DNA from: Lytechinus pictus
Taxonomy: Eukaryota
Reading direction: 5' to 3'
Length of the DNA stretch: 64,000 bases
NCBI RefSeq assembly: GCF_037042905.1
Contig: NC_087256.1
Span: 9,424,001-9,488,000, forward strand
Shown here: positions 1,167-60,763 of the stretch, piece after piece
Numbering within the stretch: position 1 is the stretch's first letter
Layout of the letters: every line of letters starts with the position of its first letter
Position numbers and translations under genes: made by a program
Notes under the pieces: model-generated
Database searches by the model: none
Told to the model about the DNA's origin: nothing
What the model saw: only the letters and a program-made list of their open reading frames with translations

Positions 1167-14118
<12,952 letters not shown>

Positions 14119-41300: not shown

Positions 41301-44300
41301 TTGTTGAAGTGAAAAGTTTATTTTCCTTTCAACAAACAAATTTTCATTTTCATTTCAAAATCAAAAGAGCAAATTATTATACAGTAACGAGATGCCAATA
41401 CAAATTAATATCCGAGGCCCTATGGATATGCTGGTGTACCGACTCAAGACGGACTAAAGCTATTTTCATTGACATATCATCGTTTGGTTTAGAGTCGGTT
41501 ATGCTTCAGTCAAAACAACGAAACCGACTCCAAACCGACCGATGGTATGTTGAAGATTGAAGATAACGTAGTAGTTTCAATCCGTGTGGAGTCGGTTACT
41601 GGTTAGTTGAATTGATTGCAGTATGAGTGACAGGAGAGAGCCTAAAAAGTCAATTGAATGAATGGTTGTGTGTTGCAGGGCACTGGGACGGACTGTAATG
41701 GCCATGGGACCCACTGCGCTGGGACAGCAGCAGGAAAAGACTACGGTGTAGCACCAAAAGCCATGGTCTATGGTGTCAGGGTTCTAGGATGCCAGGGATC
41801 TGGAGCTTGGTCTGGAATCATTGATGGTGAGCTTGTATACAAATAATACACAACATCGAGAGTACTATAAGGAATTACACACACGTGATATATATATGGA
41901 TCAGTTCTAACTCTCCCTTGGCATTTAATACCGAGGGCGTTTTGACGGTCACGGTTTTAGAAGTACTAAGCCTATGTAATAGTATTCGAATTCCCGAGCA
42001 AAATTATATGTATTATGCAGGTGTAGGTTTTATAGATTTTTATATTGTTATTTGATAAACCGCCCTCATCTAAAGACATAACCGCTCAATTGTCATTTAT
42101 AGTGACTGGTCACGTGATAGACTTCAGCAAATTATTTGATTGGGATCCACGTCACCCTTTTTTTTATTAATATCAAAGTAGAGGTCTGTGGCGCACTCGT
42201 GGCCGCATGATCAAAGGTGCCTGGCGACACATGTGAAAGCCCGGGGTTCTGTTCCCTGATCCCCCTTCCCTTGACCAATGCATTTATCATAAGCCTACAT
42301 TGCTCTAATGCTCTTTTATTCAAAATGAAGTGAAATTTGTGCAGGCATTGTTGATACCAACGTATGCACGTATTTGTTTGGTGGCTGTCCCTTTTAATGC
42401 ACTCGAGCTTGACTTCGCCCAGAGGCAAATGTTGGAGAGCGCCATCTAAAAAAACACCGAATACATTGGATCATAGGTGATTTTTGAAGGACACCATGTA
42501 CTGTGTTTAAACAAATTACATCCATTGAGCCACAAAGCCTCAAATTCACCTCTCAGACATATTACTTGTTGCTTTGTCAGGCAATTCCCAAGCATGTCTC
42601 CCAGTTCTGGGGCCCATTTCATACAGAGTTACAGCTGCCATTATGGCAACTACCACGGCAACATGGCTCAGCAGCCAATCAAAATCAAGGTTACCATGGT
42701 AGTTGCCATAATTACAGAGTTACAACAGTTGCAACTCTTTATGAAACGGGCCCCAGATGCGAGTGGGTTTTATTTTCCTTAGTTTTGCAATGTCACGTGT
42801 ACATATTGTGTCAACTTGATTATTACCTTTTAATGGAGTAAGCCAGCTTTAAAGCGGATCTTCTTAAAGAAGCAGGCCTGGAATCACATATTCCCAGAAA
42901 TACAAATAAAATAAGGCCACCGCACACCTTACGACTGTTCGCGATCCGATTTTGGAACAAATCGCGTTTTGCTCATTTTCTGAAAATGTGAATGGAACAT
43001 ATCATTTTATTTGAGATTAAAATAAATTGAAAGAATACTTATATAACCATTTTAAAAGATTGCTAGCCTTTATTTTGATGTAAAGGCCAAATTAGTTTCA
43101 AATCGTAGCCAATCGTACGACTGCTATGACGTCATTACGACTAGATATTAAATTCGCTTTTATTCTAAGAAGGATGATAGCATAGTCACAAGTTTGAACA
43201 TAGGTATTCGTACGATGATTTAGAACATTACACAGTAAGATATTCCAAGTCTCAATATTAGCATCAAAGGTCAAATTCTACTACATTTATTCTGAAATCG
43301 GGTCGCAGATCAATCGTAAGGTGTGCGGTCGCCTTTATATGCCCCTTAAAAATGATTACAGGGGTATATATTGAGTAATTATACATTAAATCATATGAAC
43401 AGCTTCTTAGGTCTATGGGAGGATCTCCTCCCTCGAACTTACCGAGATACCGTACGCCAGTACACCACCACTATCCCTCTCCGAGAACATCATCGTACAG
43501 ATCACCATCATCATCATTACTACCACTTAAAGTCTTCATTCTTTTAAGGAATTTCTAAATGAACGAAACACTGTTTGGCTTATAACGCATCAGTCTCTGG
43601 AATTATTTTGTTCTTTCTCCGCCTTTCGGTCTGTATAGGAATGGATTGGGTAGCGAGTAATGGTAACCGACCTGCTGTAGCCTCCATGTCTCTCAGCGGT
43701 CCTGCGGATGGGACTGCTGTTGATGAAGCTGTAGCCAATATGGTGGCTGCAGGTGTTACGTTGACCGTCTCAGCTGGGAACAACAACTATGATGCTTGTC
43801 AGCGCATGCCAACTAGAGCACCGGAGGTAAAGTAATTCTTGATTCGCTACGAAATTATATATAATAAAGCAAGAAAAACAATACTCAATCTTGCCGATGG
43901 CTATATAGATAAATCTTCCAATATAAGCCTCGAATTCGGCAAAGTTAAGTGAGTTAGCCACCACATATCCGAACATATCCATCTCGTACTTGTTTGACCA
44001 TATTCTTCTCATTTAAGTGGTCTGTCGCACAAACGACACCTTGTTATATTGGTCGGACCATGGTTGTAGTAGGTCTGACAGACTCGGTTTAATTTGTTGC
44101 AAATTTAAGGGAGGTCGTATAAATCTGGAAATGAAAGGAAACATTATACAATTTTGTTTTCGAAAAGACGAACACATTTACTGTCCAAGTTTCCCCTATG
44201 CCTGTTTCACATATGGCGCAATCAATTGAAACTCAGTTGTCTGCCTAATTTAGATGCCTTTGTCTCTGAGGCATTCTTTTAATTACTCCAATAAAATCAC

Positions 44301-53145: not shown

Positions 53146-55048
53146 ATGGCGGCTAACAGCACTGACCTGAATACCTGGTATACTGCCAGTCAGGAATGGA
53201 CTCATGAAACAGCAAGTGAGGAGTACGCCTTTGATTTCAAACAGAGGATAGGCGTTTCTGTTATTTACTGTCTCATTGTGTTAGTAGGTGTCACAGGNNN
53301 NNNNNNNNNNNNNNNNNNNNNNNNNNNNNNNNNNNNNNNNNNNNNNNNNNNNNNNNNNNNNNNNNNNNNNNNNNNNNNNNNNNNNNNNNNNNNNNNNNNN
53401 NNNNNNNNNNNNNNNNNNNNNNNNNNNNNNNNNNNNNNNNNNNNNNNNNNNNNNNNNNNGAGTGCAGCTCTGGGGAACTCTGATGCTAAGCTGACCATTA
53501 TTCTCTTTCCTCATTTTTTCCACAACATATCTGAATAAAAAGAGTTGGCAAATTGACTTCAAAATGTATGTTTGTATTTTTTGGACGGAAAATCAATAAA
53601 AAATAATATAATCTAGATTTGATAACAGGAAAGTTTATCATTCCTTGAAAAAAAATAAATGACCCTTCAAAAATTTAAATTTGAATACTTTGGTGGGTGC
53701 ATGACGTGATATGCTTTCTTATTTGGATATCGGCCGTTATTATGCTTATCGCAGTTTAGAAAATAAACGTAATTTAGACATCTTATATCAGTTTTAAAGA
53801 ATATTTCTTTGTTGTTCTTGCATTATTCCAATTGTCTTTATATTCAACAAAAATACTTTCAGCAGACTTGAAGTTTAAAGAATGATTTTTGAAAAAACAT
53901 TGCCCTCTAGGCTAAATATTTTTAAATGAGTGTATTTGTTAACAAAAAATAGCTTGGCATTCATGACGAGAACAATCTTCTTGACTTTTGAAACAGGAAA
54001 TGCTTGCGTCATCTTGGCTGTACTGTTCTCAAGAAAGCTTCACACCCCCACCAACATCCTGGTGGTAAATCTCAGTGTAACCGACTTTATTACCTGTTGG
54101 TCTCTTCTCATCCAAATCGTCGTTCTCTTGAACTCAGACCATGTCCTCAGGTTGGTTCCGCGTCCTCTGTGCCTCCTGGCTAGCGGAGTCACCTTCGTAG
54201 GAACTACCTGTAGTCTGATGACGCTGACACTGATTGCCTTCATGCGTTGGTACGTCATAACCCACAGCATCAGAGGTCATACAGGACTCCACACTACTAG
54301 GAAGGTTGCAACAATGGTAGTTTTTGTGTGGACTACCTCGTTGATCGTATCATTGCTTCCACCCGGTCTAGGAATAGGAACCCTGGGTTATAGTATCACC
54401 TATAAGCAATGTTGTACCGTAGATGATAATCTTATAGTCAAATATTACAGCATGGTGCAAGGCTGCGGGTCCTTCATCCTTGTGATGCTTGCCGTTTACT
54501 TTTACACTTCTATATTCTTATTCGTTTGCAAGAATGACAGGAAGTTTACACAGAGGTTTAGCCATGGGAACGACTCATGTCGTGTCAATGAATTAAACTC
54601 TGACTTAAAGGAAGGATCTAAGACAGAGGGGGATACACATTTTCCCACTCGCAGTCTTTCCTATATGGTGGAAAATGGGCATCATCAACAAGATCAAAGC
54701 GAGACAGAGCGTCGAATGGTGGAGCAATTTAGGAAGCGGGAGATAAAGTTGACAAAGAACTTATTTGTGGTGTTCTTCATTTTTGTGGTGTGTTTAGTTC
54801 CTTTCTCCATAAGCCTTGCCATTCCTGGTGGAAGCATCGTCAATATCTACTTCGCTGTCGTGGTATATTGTAACTCCTGTGTCAATCCCTTAATATACTG
54901 CCTAAAACACGACCAGTTCAAAGAGGTTTTGAGGCCATTGTTGAGATGCAGGTGGTCCAAAATTCCGCAGCCCACACAATTCATCAGGCACCTGTTTCCT
55001 TCAGATCAACATTCAGAAATTAGCAACATTTATTCATTATCAGGATAA
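53146..55048 (+). CDS. Rhodopsin-like (class A) orphan GPCR, paralog 2 (~400 aa, 2 exons)
   Basis: Exon 1 53146-53296 (gccATGG; MAANSTDLN...KQRIGVSVIYCLIVLVGVTG; 151 nt as in paralog 1; donor cut off by the N gap). Exon 2 53997-55048 with GNACV, NLSVTD, AFMRW, CLVP, NPLIY. Confidence 0.9.
53298..53459. other. Assembly gap (N run)
   Basis: Run of n inside the GPCR2 intron. Confidence 1.
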
Positions 55049-55913
55049 ATATTGTCGCAAACAATCATTCATCTGTCACCCACGTATGATGCAAACATGA
55101 TTTACTTCACCAGGCTTAGATTGATTTCTGACTTGAAATCCTTAAAGCTTCGATGACCGGTTTGCCAAGTTGATCTTCAAGATTTTATTTTCTTATTTTT
55201 TTGATGGGACAAAATATCAATGTTAAGATATTTAGACTTCAATTATCGTTAAAACAGGAATAAATGTTGTTTGGTATAAAATCCATTAGTAAAGAAACAA
55301 AAGTACTCAACATATTGTACACATGGAAGTGGATATCAACACATTATAAATGTAGACTGTAGTTGATTGAAGAATTTGTATTATCCCATCTCAAAAATAC
55401 CATAGTTAACTCAATTTAACGAATAGTCTTGAGAAGGAAGTAAGACGAATGTGAAATTTGTAGGCATAGTTTATTTTCGCATATACATGAAGTTGCGTTG
55501 AAACTGTAGAAAATATTCAATAAAATGTTTAACATGGCACATAAGGTAAAGCATAAAACAAAGTAGCACTAAAACTTTCTTTCATTGTTGATTTCTAGCT
55601 GTATTTGCGTCTTGTTTCAAATTCTACACCAACTATATATACTCATTACTTAGCTAATGATCTGAATGTTAAAAAATATGTTGAATGGGACTATCATAAA
55701 GGAATGTTTACTTAGAAAGGAACAACATGGAATGAGATGGAGGCTTATAGCTTTATTTTGCAATGCATATAAAATGTATATTAATTAGTTGATTTATATT
55801 AATAGATAGATAATTATAATTTTTTAACTTTATAATATATATAAAAAAAGAGTTTTTCGTTTGTAAATGTTAACGTAGTGCGCTAATGCACAATTCATAA
55901 ATTAGCATGAAAA

Positions 55914-58900
55914 TCAGGATTCATTGGGGACATAGAGAAGAAGATTTTCGGAATCGTGCAACTCGGTGACTTTGTCTCTGCTAGCTGTTTCTAGGATGAC
56001 GTCACGAACTTCATTTGGTGATAGGTCAGGATTCAAGCCAAGATGGACTGCAACAACACCTGCCAAAATGAGAAGTTCAACCAATATGAATTGGTGTTAG
56101 TAGTAAAGTGTTAGTGGAAAGTAAGACAAATCGGGCTCTTTCTCTTAATAGCCTTTCCATATGGAAGAGGGTAGCCGACAAATGCCAGTGACAGCCATCT
56201 CTGTCTTCTTTTTGACGTACGTAATTCTTGATATCAAAATTGATTTACCGATATATAGGCAACAGACCTAATAGCTTTTCAAGTTATAGGAAAACATTCA
56301 AATATAAGTAATACCACTGAAATGAGAGTGGATTTCAATTCTTTTGAACATGTGCATACAACAGAGTCTGATTCCACCTGGTAGCGGAGGTGATTTATTT
56401 CCCCCAAGAAAGTTAGGATGCTTGTAAGCAAACAACCAGGGAACGGAAGGCTCGAGACCCTCTCTGTTGGACCTCTTGTATTGAGGACATGTGTCTTATC
56501 AAAGGAAACCAGCGCACCAAGTGAGAATGAAACCTCGGCCAACGGATTGATTAGAAAGTCAAGGGTGATTATAATACAAAAGTTATAATTCAAGATTTTA
56601 AATCATTTATAACGAACCTGCTACATGAGGACATGCCATGCTGGTTCCGCTCAGCGATCGATATCCGTCGTCAGATCGGTAGTCTGCGCTCAGAATGCGA
56701 TGCCCGGGAGCAAAGATATCCACGCATGCGCCCCAGTTTGAAAAGTAGACCCTGGCATCGTCATCCTGGATCGCACCGACTGTGATTGCCTTTAGAATTG
56801 AAACAAACAAAATATGATAATTATTTTTATGTGATTATAAGATTAATTACACTCTAGAAACAAATCAGTCAAAATGACTAGTTAATAGGGTCAGCTGGGT
56901 GCAGCTGTTATTCTAGTCATATTTGACTATTTTCTAGTCGTATTTTACAAGAGCAGAGTTATTTCTGACTAGAATATTAATTTGTCAGAAATGTGACTGT
57001 CATATCAGTTGCACCCAGGTGACTACTTGTCTAGTCAATTTGACTGATTTGTTTTAAGAGTGTAGGCAATCTAGCAATATAGATTTGTAATATTTCCCCT
57101 GAATGAGTCGTTGATAATCAATTACTATTCCTCCACACAATCTACTGTTCCCTGTATGGAGTAAGATAATTGACCTATGTGTTTATCACTTTTTTAGGAC
57201 GGTTCCCTTTTATTACACCTTCTAAGCTCCGTAGTTTATCATCTGCCATAATAAACAATCGGCAAATCAATTAGGATGGTTCTCTTGATCTTGAGGAATC
57301 ATAACAGTTGATTTTAGAGGTCTAGGCAACTTTGAAAAAAAAATTGTTCTTAGATATGGAGGAAACATGAAGAAGATCTTTCAACAATACCTCAGGTGCT
57401 CTGGCGGGAGAAGCGCGGCATGCATCGTAGTCGCTATTACCAGCCGCTACCACCACCGTCACACCTGCCCTGTGAAGGTTTCCCAGTGACTCGTCTACAG
57501 AACGAAGTCCACCGCCTCCAAGAGACATGCTAGCAACGGCTGGACGAATACCATTGACGGCAACCCAGTCCATACCTAAAGGGACAGTGTAAACAAATGA
57601 GTAACTGACTTGGAAAATAGGGAAAGAGCGAGATATAGAGAGTAAGCAAACTGAACTTGAGGTGATTGTGTAAAAACTTATAAACAACAATCGATGACCA
57701 TTTTAGAGTCGACATACAAGTCATGTCGATCCGTCACAGAGCTTTCGATTTACATGACAGATGTTTCTACGACCATAAAATGACCATAACCATCTGCACA
57801 TTTGAAATTTCGTCGGATCCTCCCGTTTTACAACTGTTTCCGGGATGAATCGACGCTACGAGGCGTTTTGCTGAAAACGACAACATAATAAAGAGTTTTT
57901 GGGTCACGTGATAATGTTTTCAATGCGTCAATGCGAGTAAGTCTTCATCCTAAAAATCTAAAAAAAAAAAATCCCCAGTGTATCATCCGAAGCAGATTAG
58001 TCTTCGGAGTTGGGAAGACGTGCCTTTGGTTCATCGTGACGCGAAAAATCTCCGTAACTTGAAGGACATGTAGTAGTCAACTTGAAGAGGGAAATCATTG
58101 GACTTCTGTGCAATAATGCACTTTAATTGATATGGTATAAAATACTGACCATCGATAATGGCAGACCACGAGCCGTATCCATAACATCCAAGAACCCGCA
58201 CGGCATATACTTTGGCGGCCTTGGCAACCCCGTATCGTTTGCCTGCGATTGTACCTGCACAATGAGTGCCATGTCCCTGGCAGTCACCTTCGTTCCCCTG
58301 CCGATCAAGAATATAAGTTGTCGGTATGAATAGAGAAAGCATCCTATATTTTGTGGGTAAATTACCCAACACTCACCGTCAATGACCGCTGACCATGACC
58401 CAGACCCATAACAACCAAGAACCCGTACGGCGTAGACTTTAGCAGCTTTGGCAACTCCGTACCGTTTACCTGCGATCGTGCCGGCACAGTGGGTCCCATG
58501 CCCTTGACAATCACCATCGTTGCCCTGTCATTTATGGAAGAGTGGATATTTTCGGTTATGACCTTTAGACAAACTCACCATCGATTACAGATGATGATGA
58601 ACCGGACCCGTAACACCCAAGAACTCTGACGGCATACACCTTTGCACCCTTGGCCACACCGTACCTTTTACCCGCTATAGTCCCTGCACAGTGAGTCCCG
58701 TGACCTTGACAATCGCCATCATTACCCTATTATAGAATAGTCATGATATCCATTGATGTTATTTATGTCGACGTAATTTCAGTAACACGTTTGGACATAC
58801 TGAATAACAATCCTGGAATTTTAAATAAAAAAATGCCGATCTTTAGTATCGAATGGTTCTAGCCGCATCCTGACCATGGTATTTTCTATGTAGTTTGAAA

Positions 58901-60604
58901 AAGTTGAAGATCTATGTGAATTACCCCCCCCCCTCTATATTTTAGATAATAATTCACCTCAAGGAAACTGACTTTATGTTTATTATATCATTTCCTGAAA
59001 TGAATTTTTTCTGGAACATAATTTTTTCTAGAATCTTTATCAACTCTTAAGACATGAAAGATGTCTATGATATATAAGGTACTTACGATAGCGTAGTTCA
59101 TGGCGTCATAGACGAATTCTGCTCTGCCCTCAAAGTCCTCATGGGTTGTTCTGATTCCAGTATCAAGGACGTATACATTCACACCGCTGCCATTACCTAT
59201 CAAGATTATATGGTTATGGAGGAGTCAGTAAAAAATACACCAAACAAAATACAACGCAGCGATCTTACCACCGATGTTTATCATGAACATCAAGGAATAA
59301 AAGTAATGTCGAACATGATTTTTTGAAATGTTTGGCAACAAAAACAACAGCTACCCATCCCAGACTGGTATAATAAGAAAACCTGCAGACATCAAGGTAA
59401 TTTTGAATCATTTCAAAACGACAATGAAAGATTGAATGGGTATATCTTACCGACTGGAGTATAACTATCATCGAGAGGAAGATCTCTTTGGTTGATCCTG
59501 TCAAGTCCCCAGATCTCTGTAGTGTGTGCTAGGCCATCTTCTTCCACGTACTTCACAGAGGGGTGGGCTCGCACCTGTGTTGGTTAGGGTGTGCGTGGGA
59601 GTGTGAGTGTGTGTGTGGGGATGTAAGTGGATTGGGTGAGCGTGTATGTGTGTAAGTACGGATTTGTGCGTGGCAAAAAATACAGGTAAGTGTGTGTGGG
59701 GGTAGGGGTGGGTGAATATAAGGGTGACAGAGTGTTTGGGGTGTGTGGAGGGAGAAACAGTCAGAGAGTGTGTGTGAGAGAGATGTAGAGCTTCGATGTA
59801 AGGCAAAGTCGTTATTCTTTTTATGCTTCATACCTCGCTTCCTGTCATTAATTATTTTGCATCTGTGCCAAAAAAGGGGTGTGTGGGTTGAATTCATTGC
59901 AACAATGATTTAAAATTTCATGTGCCAGTCTAACAGGAAAAAATACATTATTATTATTGAAATGCTACCCATTGAGAGGGTTAAAAGCGCAACATGACCT
60001 GTTTTGTTTTGCCAATGTTCAAGCATTTTGGCCTAAATGATTGATTATGTTTCAGTTTAAATTGATGAAATATATAACAAAAACTCTTACCACTGCTAAG
60101 GCCTCCTTTGATAAAGATATTGCAAATCCATTGAGGACTCTGTTGTACTCTTTCAGAGGGTTGTTAAATGTTATACTTTTCAGCCGGGATTCTTCATGAA
60201 GAGATTGTAGAACGTTTGGAAGCACAGCATTCCTCTGCCAGGTGAAAGACAATTTTATAGATTTATCAAATCAGATTTACATAATTTCAAATGATAATCG
60301 TGCTTTTATACATTTCAATTTTTTCGGTAAAAAGTCACCCAGATACTAATAACATATTCTCAATAAGGTATATGATTGTTCTAATATCCGAACGACACAA
60401 AAAGAGACTATCTAATAATCTAATATTATGCTTTTCGTCTACTTATCGGAAATACTTATATATTTCCCCAGTACTTACCTTCAGGACTACGATGTACTGC
60501 TCCTTAATGGCTTCTCGTGTTTTGAATAAAGGAGCTCGACGAGCCGCCACAACCGCACCAGATAGCAAGATGGAGAATGAGAGGATGGAGACAATGCACC
60601 GCAT
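55914..60604 (-). CDS. Secreted subtilisin-like serine protease, S8A proteinase K/aqualysin type, paralog 3 (~384 aa; exon 5 present in three alternative copies)
   Basis: Exons in transcript order: 60479-60604, 60091-60234, 59451-59574, 59087-59196, [58579-58726 | 58377-58524 | 58150-58297], 57391-57575, 56618-56789, 55914-56059. Same phases as paralogs 1 and 2. Signal peptide [20 protein letters not shown]; [55 protein letters not shown]; ends [10 protein letters not shown]. Confidence 0.93.
56848..57064. mobile_element. TA|CACT...AGTG|TA palindromic MITE in intron 6 of protease 3
   Basis: tacactctagaaacaaatcagtcaaaatgactag ... ctagtcaatttgactgatttgttttaagagtgta. Confidence 0.8.
58150..58297 (-). 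CDS. Protease 3 alternative exon 5C (catalytic His exon)
   Basis: cggcag|[50 protein letters not shown]|gtcagt; 148 nt, phase 0 in, phase 1 out. Confidence 0.9.
58377..58524 (-). CDS. Protease 3 alternative exon 5B (catalytic His exon)
   Basis: tgacag|[50 protein letters not shown]|gtgagt; 148 nt, phase 0 in, phase 1 out; absent from the ORF track. Confidence 0.9.
58579..58726 (-). CDS. Protease 3 alternative exon 5A (catalytic His exon)
   Basis: taatag|[50 protein letters not shown]|gtgagt; 148 nt, phase 0 in, phase 1 out; absent from the ORF track. Confidence 0.9.
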
Positions 60605-60763
60605 GATTGACGTCATCGGGTTAATCTATATAATATTAATGAATAAAATGTTGATGAAGTTAGTAACAAAGAGTACTAAAAATCATTCGAGACATGGATT
60701 CTTCCATATATTATCGATCAGGTATCTGTGTACAGGTTGTTGGATGGTCTTCTCCAATTGTTT

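Follow-up and report, generated by a model that had tools for sequence, protein, structure and literature searches.

Three tandem copies of a catalytic-histidine exon, probably spliced one at a time, in a proteinase K-like gene of the sea urchin Lytechinus pictus

In the known clusters of mutually exclusive exons, such as exons 5a/5b of SCN-alpha, those of muscle myosin heavy chain, and exons 2/3 of alpha-tropomyosin, homologous exons of equal length and phase lie in tandem, each with its own splice sites. A single copy enters each mRNA, the exon length is not a multiple of three, and orthologous copies are under purifying selection. Here, we describe a locus that is alike in all these respects in the sea urchin Lytechinus pictus, within a window of 64,000 nucleotides (nt) (assembly GCF_037042905.1, contig NC_087256.1, positions 9,424,001 to 9,488,000, forward strand). 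The host is an 8-exon gene on the minus strand, encoding an S8 subtilase of the proteinase K/aqualysin type, in which exon 5 is present as three copies, 5A, 5B and 5C. The resemblance to alpha-tropomyosin, a cluster of the steric type, extends to very short intervening introns, although the exclusion mechanism proposed below for the urchin gene is deduced from sequence. Unlike the known clusters, the urchin cluster resides in a gene for a predicted secreted subtilase, and the part that is swapped comprises a catalytic residue and a putative specificity loop. The best explanation of our data, to which we assign a probability of about 0.9, is that 5A, 5B and 5C are three mutually exclusive exons that would have arisen by tandem duplication of a 148-nt exon encoding the catalytic histidine and the substrate-binding loop at positions 100-107. 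As such, the cluster is of a textbook type and changes no general concept.

The gene model, which we built from the sequence, consists of the following features, given in window coordinates.

55914-60616, minus strand: whole coding region of the subtilase gene, 388 amino acids with any single exon-5 copy.
60479-60616, minus strand: exon 1 of the sequence-built model.
60091-60234, minus strand: exon 2, matching Pfam Inhibitor_I9 (PF05922).
59451-59574, minus strand: exon 3 of the sequence-built model.
59087-59196, minus strand: exon 4, constitutive, with the catalytic Asp in the motif VLDTG; its phase-0 end is spliced to 5A, 5B or 5C.
58579-58726, minus strand: exon 5A, 148 nt, the first copy in the direction of transcription; RefSeq isoform X3; donor GTGAGT.
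58525-58578, minus strand: spacer intron between 5A and 5B, 54 nt, GTGAGT...ACAG.
58377-58524, minus strand: exon 5B, 148 nt, the middle copy; RefSeq isoform X1; donor GTGAGT.
58298-58376, minus strand: spacer intron between 5B and 5C, 79 nt, GTGAGT...GCAG.
58150-58297, minus strand: exon 5C, 148 nt, the last copy; RefSeq isoform X2; donor GTCAGT.
57391-57575, minus strand: exon 6, constitutive, from the gene model and RNA joints.
56618-56789, minus strand: exon 7, with the catalytic Ser.
55914-56059, minus strand: exon 8 of the sequence-built model.

Each exon-5 copy comprises 49 codons plus 1 nt, starts in phase 0, and lies between an AG and a GT dinucleotide; the first 2 nt of exon 6 finish a Gly codon opened by the final G of every copy. 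Because 148 is not a multiple of 3, only the inclusion of a single copy keeps the frame open: any second copy falls out of frame and runs into a TGA after 4 codons, while skipping all copies shifts the exon-6 frame and leads to a stop after 26 codons.

Exons 4-7 match Pfam Peptidase_S8 (PF00082), and exon 5A alone does so with E = 7e-9. Aqualysin-1 (4dzt) is the best solved relative (E = 1e-87), and the catalytic triad D147/H181/S333, in the subtilase order Asp-His-Ser, aligns to D39/H70/S222 of that enzyme. From this alignment, it follows that exon 5 encodes the catalytic His plus the following strand and loop. A hydrophobic, signal-peptide-like N-terminus is predicted from the sequence of exon 1, and database relatives likewise combine PF05922 with PF00082. 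We conclude that the product is a peptidase S8A of the proteinase K subfamily with an I9 propeptide, predicted to be active and secreted. The gene thus shares the I9 propeptide, the S8 domain and the Asp/His/Ser triad with the proteinase K/aqualysin-1 S8A group. In contrast to the aqualysin-1 group, the urchin genes are animal, contain introns, and form a large family, with at least 53 subtilase His-exon matches in the L. pictus genome, partly clustered on the same chromosome. Two more such matches lie in the window, both on the plus strand, at 41682-41825 and 10702-10830 (71% and 56% identity to 5B, respectively). A search of protein representatives with the 49-residue exon returned mostly bacterial multi-domain subtilases but led to a full-length echinoderm homolog, through which the family was recovered, and a search with the 5C open frame among exon fragments of the open-reading-frame kind from other urchin assemblies gave 2 matches, too few for an exon tree.

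We next consider the RNA evidence. RNA from four runs in three studies, comprising contig sets X1, X2 and X8 and the raw paired RNA-seq run X21, was mapped to window positions 55800-60700. Depth was about 100 on exons and zero on introns, and every intron of the model is backed by a joint. Each of the three copies has joints to both exon 4 and exon 6 in at least two runs, and joints to exon 6 in all four. For 5A, the joints are 58725->59086 and 57573->58577, found in runs X1, X2 and X21, with run X8 showing the exon-6 side only; for 5B, they are 57573->58375 and 58523/58518->59086; and for 5C, 57573->58148 and 58296->59086, both in all four runs. The use of the copies was as follows.

Exon 5A: 58 reads on the exon-6 joint and 32 on the exon-4 joint in run X21; 20-27% of exon-6 joints across the four runs.
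Exon 5B: 135 reads on the exon-6 joint and 105 on the exon-4 joint in run X21; 54-63% of exon-6 joints across the four runs.
Exon 5C: 21 reads on the exon-6 joint and 13 on the exon-4 joint in run X21; 10-25% of exon-6 joints across the four runs.

Exon 5B was thus the major form in each run. Contigs of 182-205 nt in runs X1, X2 and X8 contain a single copy plus 14-37 nt on each side, and these flanks are joined to exon 6 and, in most cases (with two gaps), to exon 4. Among the best-supported joints listed for the four runs, which leave aside five weaker ones, none connects 5A to 5B, 5B to 5C, or 5A to 5C. In addition, runs X8 and X21 show alleles of Lytechinus variegatus (GGC>GGA and AAC>AAT at the start of 5B, and GGC>GGA in 5A), which indicates that all three copies are used in that species too. 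Together, these results show that, rare events aside, each mRNA carries one exon-5 copy.

The three single-copy gene models correspond to the RefSeq L. pictus aqualysin-1-like isoforms, with identical proteins: X1 (XP_054765966.2) contains 5B, X2 (XP_054765967.2) contains 5C, and X3 (XP_054765968.2) contains 5A. Isoforms X1, X2 and X3 of LOC578252 in Strongylocentrotus purpuratus carry the 5B-, 5C- and 5A-type exons. For L. variegatus, RefSeq provides only the 5B isoform (XP_041476915.1), despite the presence of all three copies in the genome. The alternative use of the three copies is therefore already modelled by the NCBI pipeline, and the claim of the initial annotation that each copy is translated agrees both with these isoforms and with the RNA joints.

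What do the copies change in the enzyme? With His181 set on His69 of proteinase K, the variable residues fall at proteinase K positions 63, 87, 101, 104, 106 and 107. In exon numbering, the diagnostic residues are Gly27, Ser44 and Ser46 for 5A and Glu3, Tyr41 and Ile47 for 5C. Exon 5B has Trp104 and Val107; 5C has Tyr101, Trp104 and Ile107; and in 5A, the residues are Ser104 (Thr in S. purpuratus), Ser106 and Val107. Each copy keeps its own states between genera, and 5A lacks an aromatic residue at position 104 in all three species (L. pictus, L. variegatus and S. purpuratus). Segment 100-104 of subtilases contacts the backbone of the substrate, and the walls of the S4 pocket include residues 104 and 107. 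Because the copies differ at S4-pocket positions 101/104/106/107, one gene would give three enzymes with different P4/P3 preference, and we consider it somewhat more probable than a coin toss that the isoforms do differ in this way. The chief competing idea is that the exclusive cluster is real but its isoforms are enzymatically equivalent, and are kept for regulation (stage- or tissue-specific splicing, or dosage) or differ in stability or inhibitor sensitivity. Just 3-6 of the 49 residues differ, and the four runs gave similar proportions of the three forms, as equivalence would predict. However, the differences cluster at positions 101/104/106/107 of the substrate-binding loop, and they are conserved by copy between genera, as at position 104. 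We therefore regard equivalence as a serious possibility that falls short of even odds.

A second set of questions concerns how a single copy is chosen. The other introns of the gene measure 244-1003 nt, such that the spacers, at 54 and 79 nt, are three to five times below the shortest of them (244 nt). Their lengths in L. pictus, L. variegatus and S. purpuratus are 54/54/69 nt and 79/79/78 nt, respectively, while spacer sequence is not conserved beyond random alignment. Spacers this short may be spliced too inefficiently to permit double inclusion, which would then be blocked because a donor lies too close to the branch point that follows it (steric exclusion); nonsense-mediated decay could serve as a backstop against out-of-frame, multi-copy transcripts. 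The spacer lengths fit this combination of steric exclusion and decay, and we infer it on that basis. Alternatively, exclusivity could be achieved by competing RNA pairing between a docking site and selectors, as in insect Dscam and 14-3-3 zeta, and this mechanism is known for several arthropod multi-exon clusters. Yet, outside the splice sites, no block is shared by the two genera Lytechinus and Strongylocentrotus (46-65% identity) in intron 4, in either spacer, or in the intron downstream of 5C. Furthermore, the strongest intermolecular duplexes that flanking introns form with the spacers score like shuffled sequences (|z| < 1.6). Both tests are weak and cover intronic sequence. Pairing of this kind is, in our judgement, improbable here.

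The age and maintenance of the copies can be read from their divergence. In L. pictus, 5A and 5B differ synonymously at 28 of 49 codons and by replacement at 3 (34 nt differences; 3/2/29 at the three codon positions). The counts for 5B and 5C are again 28 and 3 (33 nt differences; 1/1/31), and those for 5A and 5C are 29 and 6 (41 nt differences; 4/3/34). The copies are mutually 72-78% identical in nucleotides and 88-94% in amino acids, and no indels or in-frame stops occur across the three; the excess of differences at third positions is significant (chi-square p = 1e-9 to 1e-12). Mechanical repeat finding gave a repeat unit of 160 nt, comprising the exon and its splice consensus, where similarity ends, and alignment of the 54-nt spacer with the 79-nt one scores no higher than expected from shuffling (z = 0.16). 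The first two of these pairwise counts, along with the lack of indels and stops, had been reported in the initial annotation and were reproduced exactly; its statement that the spacers do not align was borne out as well.

At the four-fold sites shared between copies, 15-18 of 24 differ (62-75%), i.e. these sites are saturated. Selection favouring silent-site divergence was considered and rejected, as the four-fold differences do not exceed the 75% expected at saturation. The synonymous distance (dS) between copies is undefined by the NG86 method and ranges unstably from 2.6 to about 20 by maximum likelihood, with nonsynonymous distances (dN) of 0.03-0.06. Given a proportion of synonymous differences above 0.75, NG86, LWL85 and YN00 are unusable for dS between the copies, and comparisons of orthologs were used instead. 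The pairwise dN/dS check that the initial annotation had proposed thus came out as it expected in part: the ratio is far below 1 and dS is high, but since silent sites are saturated, the copy-versus-copy ratio is just an upper bound, at about 0.02.

The genomes of two other species contain all three copies in an unchanged order, each copy flanked by AG and GT:

S. purpuratus (locus L033): 5A at 6567-6714, 5B at 6784-6931, 5C at 7010-7157; spacers of 69 and 78 nt.
L. variegatus (locus L034): 5A at 5038-5185, 5B at 5240-5387, 5C at 5467-5614; spacers of 54 and 79 nt.

In all nine copies of the three species, both the splice dinucleotides and the reading frame are intact. Comparison of each L. 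pictus copy with its orthologs gave the following counts of synonymous and replacement codons, for which the binomial null was 30% synonymous.

Exon 5A: 13/2 against S. purpuratus (dS 0.52, binomial p 9e-6) and 6/0 against L. variegatus.
Exon 5B: 17/0 against S. purpuratus (dS 0.71, binomial p 1e-9) and 8/0 against L. variegatus.
Exon 5C: 20/2 against S. purpuratus (dS 0.98, binomial p 4e-9) and 2/0 against L. variegatus.

Similarly, a codon model of 12 exon sequences yielded a tree-wide omega (dN/dS) of 0.014, and fixing omega at 1 costs 162 log-likelihood (lnL) units. These data show strong purifying selection on each copy since the duplication, in accord with the initial annotation, and no copy has an omega near 1.

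These comparisons also bear on the idea that 5B alone is functional, with 5A and 5C being cryptic or in decay and included through splicing noise. Although 5B is the major form in each run (54-63% of joints) and is the only form annotated by RefSeq in L. variegatus, the shares of 5A and 5C each lie within 10-27% of joints across the four runs, which come from three studies. Moreover, the differences between their L. pictus and S. purpuratus orthologs are nearly all synonymous, Gly27 and Ser46 of 5A and Tyr41 and Ile47 of 5C are conserved between species, and the splice sites and frame of both are whole in three species. We therefore consider it very unlikely that 5A and 5C are noise, and continue to treat all three copies as functional exons.

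The relationships among the copies bear on their age. The same copy differs between species at 2-22 nt, versus 26-41 nt for different copies, and a topology that groups the sequences by species is worse than one that groups them by copy by 46 lnL units (approximately unbiased (AU) test p = 6e-5). Unconstrained maximum-likelihood trees of 147 nt gave support of 98-99 for the 5A and neighbour-exon clades. The copies thus group by copy and not by species, the outcome that the initial annotation had named as the sign of an old cluster, and the cluster therefore predates the divergence of Lytechinus and Strongylocentrotus. If the likeness of the copies at the protein level were due instead to gene conversion (concerted evolution), rather than to purifying selection on each copy, silent sites would be homogenised too, yet they are saturated; grouping by copy across species likewise speaks against conversion, and in the three species we saw no within-species tracts of identical silent sites shared between copies. 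What hints at it is a possible small tract in S. purpuratus, where 5B and 5C (L033 6784-7157) differ at 26 nt versus 33 in L. pictus and where 5C has Asp3, as in 5B; this closeness could be a short conversion tract or chance. As a general account of the protein likeness, conversion is even less credible than splicing noise. Finally, a recent duplication, haplotype merge or assembly artefact, which only the tandem arrangement would favour and which the initial annotation had already discounted, can be dismissed, given the saturated synonymous sites, the shared arrangement in three independent assemblies of three species, and the presence of all three copies in RNA of two species.

A limit on the age of the cluster in the other direction comes from Diadema setosum, in which the ortholog (L035) contains a single exon 5 whose protein is one residue from 5B. 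Because Diadema has a single exon and Lytechinus and Strongylocentrotus have three, the triplication is placed between the Diadema/camarodont split and the Lytechinus/Strongylocentrotus split. The 5B protein is identical in S. purpuratus, and the 5B-like protein of Diadema is a hint, suggestive in strength, that 5B is closest to the ancestral state.

Other members of the family provide further comparisons. In L. pictus, a tandem paralog lying about 8 kb upstream (L031 4583-4730, minus strand; G000:C12:9490583-9490730; XP_063963520.1) shares the 8-exon structure but has a single exon 5, with donor GTCAGT and 5C-like C-terminal residues (SAIID); its L. variegatus counterpart (L036) also contains a single copy. 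No relics of additional exon-5 copies were found in the Diadema ortholog (L035) or in the tandem paralog. A second paralog, by contrast, has two 148-nt His-exon copies (L032 5808-5957 and 6698-6847, minus strand; G000:C12, about 16.44 Mb). It resembles the window gene in that the same homologous 148-nt exon is duplicated in tandem, two isoforms are annotated (XP_054766636/7 in L. pictus; LOC585917 X1/X2 in S. purpuratus), and the arrangement is conserved in Lytechinus and Strongylocentrotus; it differs in having two copies, a spacer that in L. pictus is about 740 nt long, and other variable positions (7, 29-31, 39 and 49). Since residues specific to this paralog are common to both of its copies, its exon was duplicated independently of the one in the window. 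Both copies are present in the Diadema setosum ortholog (L037 9220-9369 and 9757-9906), for which one protein is annotated, and the two-copy cluster is therefore older than the three-copy cluster. In the sea cucumber Apostichopus japonicus, we observed two tandem subtilase genes merged into or lying next to one gene model (L038 3664-3813 and 16367-16516); there is no exon cluster at this locus, each of the two genes having a single His exon.

Several points weigh against our interpretation, or narrow it. Exclusivity may be less than absolute, in that rare double inclusion or skipping could lie beyond the best-supported joints listed. The differences between L. pictus and L. variegatus and the variant letters in runs X8 and X21 constitute one line of evidence, not two. 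The copy-versus-copy dN/dS cannot by itself date the duplication. In the unconstrained 147-nt trees, the 5B and 5C clades are weakly supported (43-70), and neither the branching order among 5B, 5C, the neighbour exon and Diadema nor the root emerges. In the two-copy paralog, an exon pair of this type is separated by the long spacer given above, and short spacers are therefore not required in the family. Lastly, the proposed difference in specificity depends on an alignment numbered after proteinase K/subtilisin and on textbook knowledge of the S4 pocket.

Considering the three-copy cluster together with the older pair in the paralog, we tentatively propose, at a little under even odds, that echinoid proteinase K-like proteases have repeatedly made the His/S4-loop exon a splice-selected "specificity cassette", the isoforms of which would have different P4/P3 preferences. 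If so, one gene would supply several digestive or extracellular protease specificities. Members of the aqualysin-1-like family (PstI/pstl1) are reported to mark gut cells of an exocrine pancreas-like type in the larvae of urchins and sea stars (PMC11817407; bioRxiv 10.64898/2026.09.20.752982), and the present gene may or may not be one of them. In the literature searched, we found no paper on the three-copy His-exon cluster. What appears to be undescribed is the host family, the nature of the swapped part (catalytic residue and specificity loop), the age bracket, the selection on each copy, and the recurrence in a paralog.

At this locus, alternative splicing exchanges a portion of the active-site cleft and leaves the catalytic residue unchanged, a clean example from nature that is documented in three genomes and in RNA from two species. 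It offers a small system for asking how few changes at positions 101/104/106/107 shift the specificity of a subtilase, and one for asking how very short introns and frame incompatibility enforce a one-of-three choice outside arthropods and vertebrates. It also flags under-annotation: in L. variegatus (the window gene) and in Diadema (the two-copy paralog), the copies are present but one isoform is annotated.

Three further observations concern the gene and its surroundings. In L. variegatus-type reads, codon 3 of the annotated open reading frame is TAA (60609 G>T plus three neighbouring changes; window 60602-60616, minus strand), and Met5 (ATG at 60604-60602) is probably the conserved start, in agreement with the 384-residue L. 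variegatus protein. Within intron 6, at window positions 56784-57111, contig depth reached about 2500 (run X8), with many indels and loose ends; this stretch behaves like a dispersed repeat transcribed elsewhere and not like part of the protease mRNA. Lastly, an intronless open frame of 372 amino acids encoding a rhodopsin-type G-protein-coupled receptor occupies window positions 53930-55048 on the plus strand, tail-to-tail with the protease gene, and because the 7tm_1 gene is likewise placed in S. purpuratus (L033) and L. variegatus (L034), synteny is conserved.

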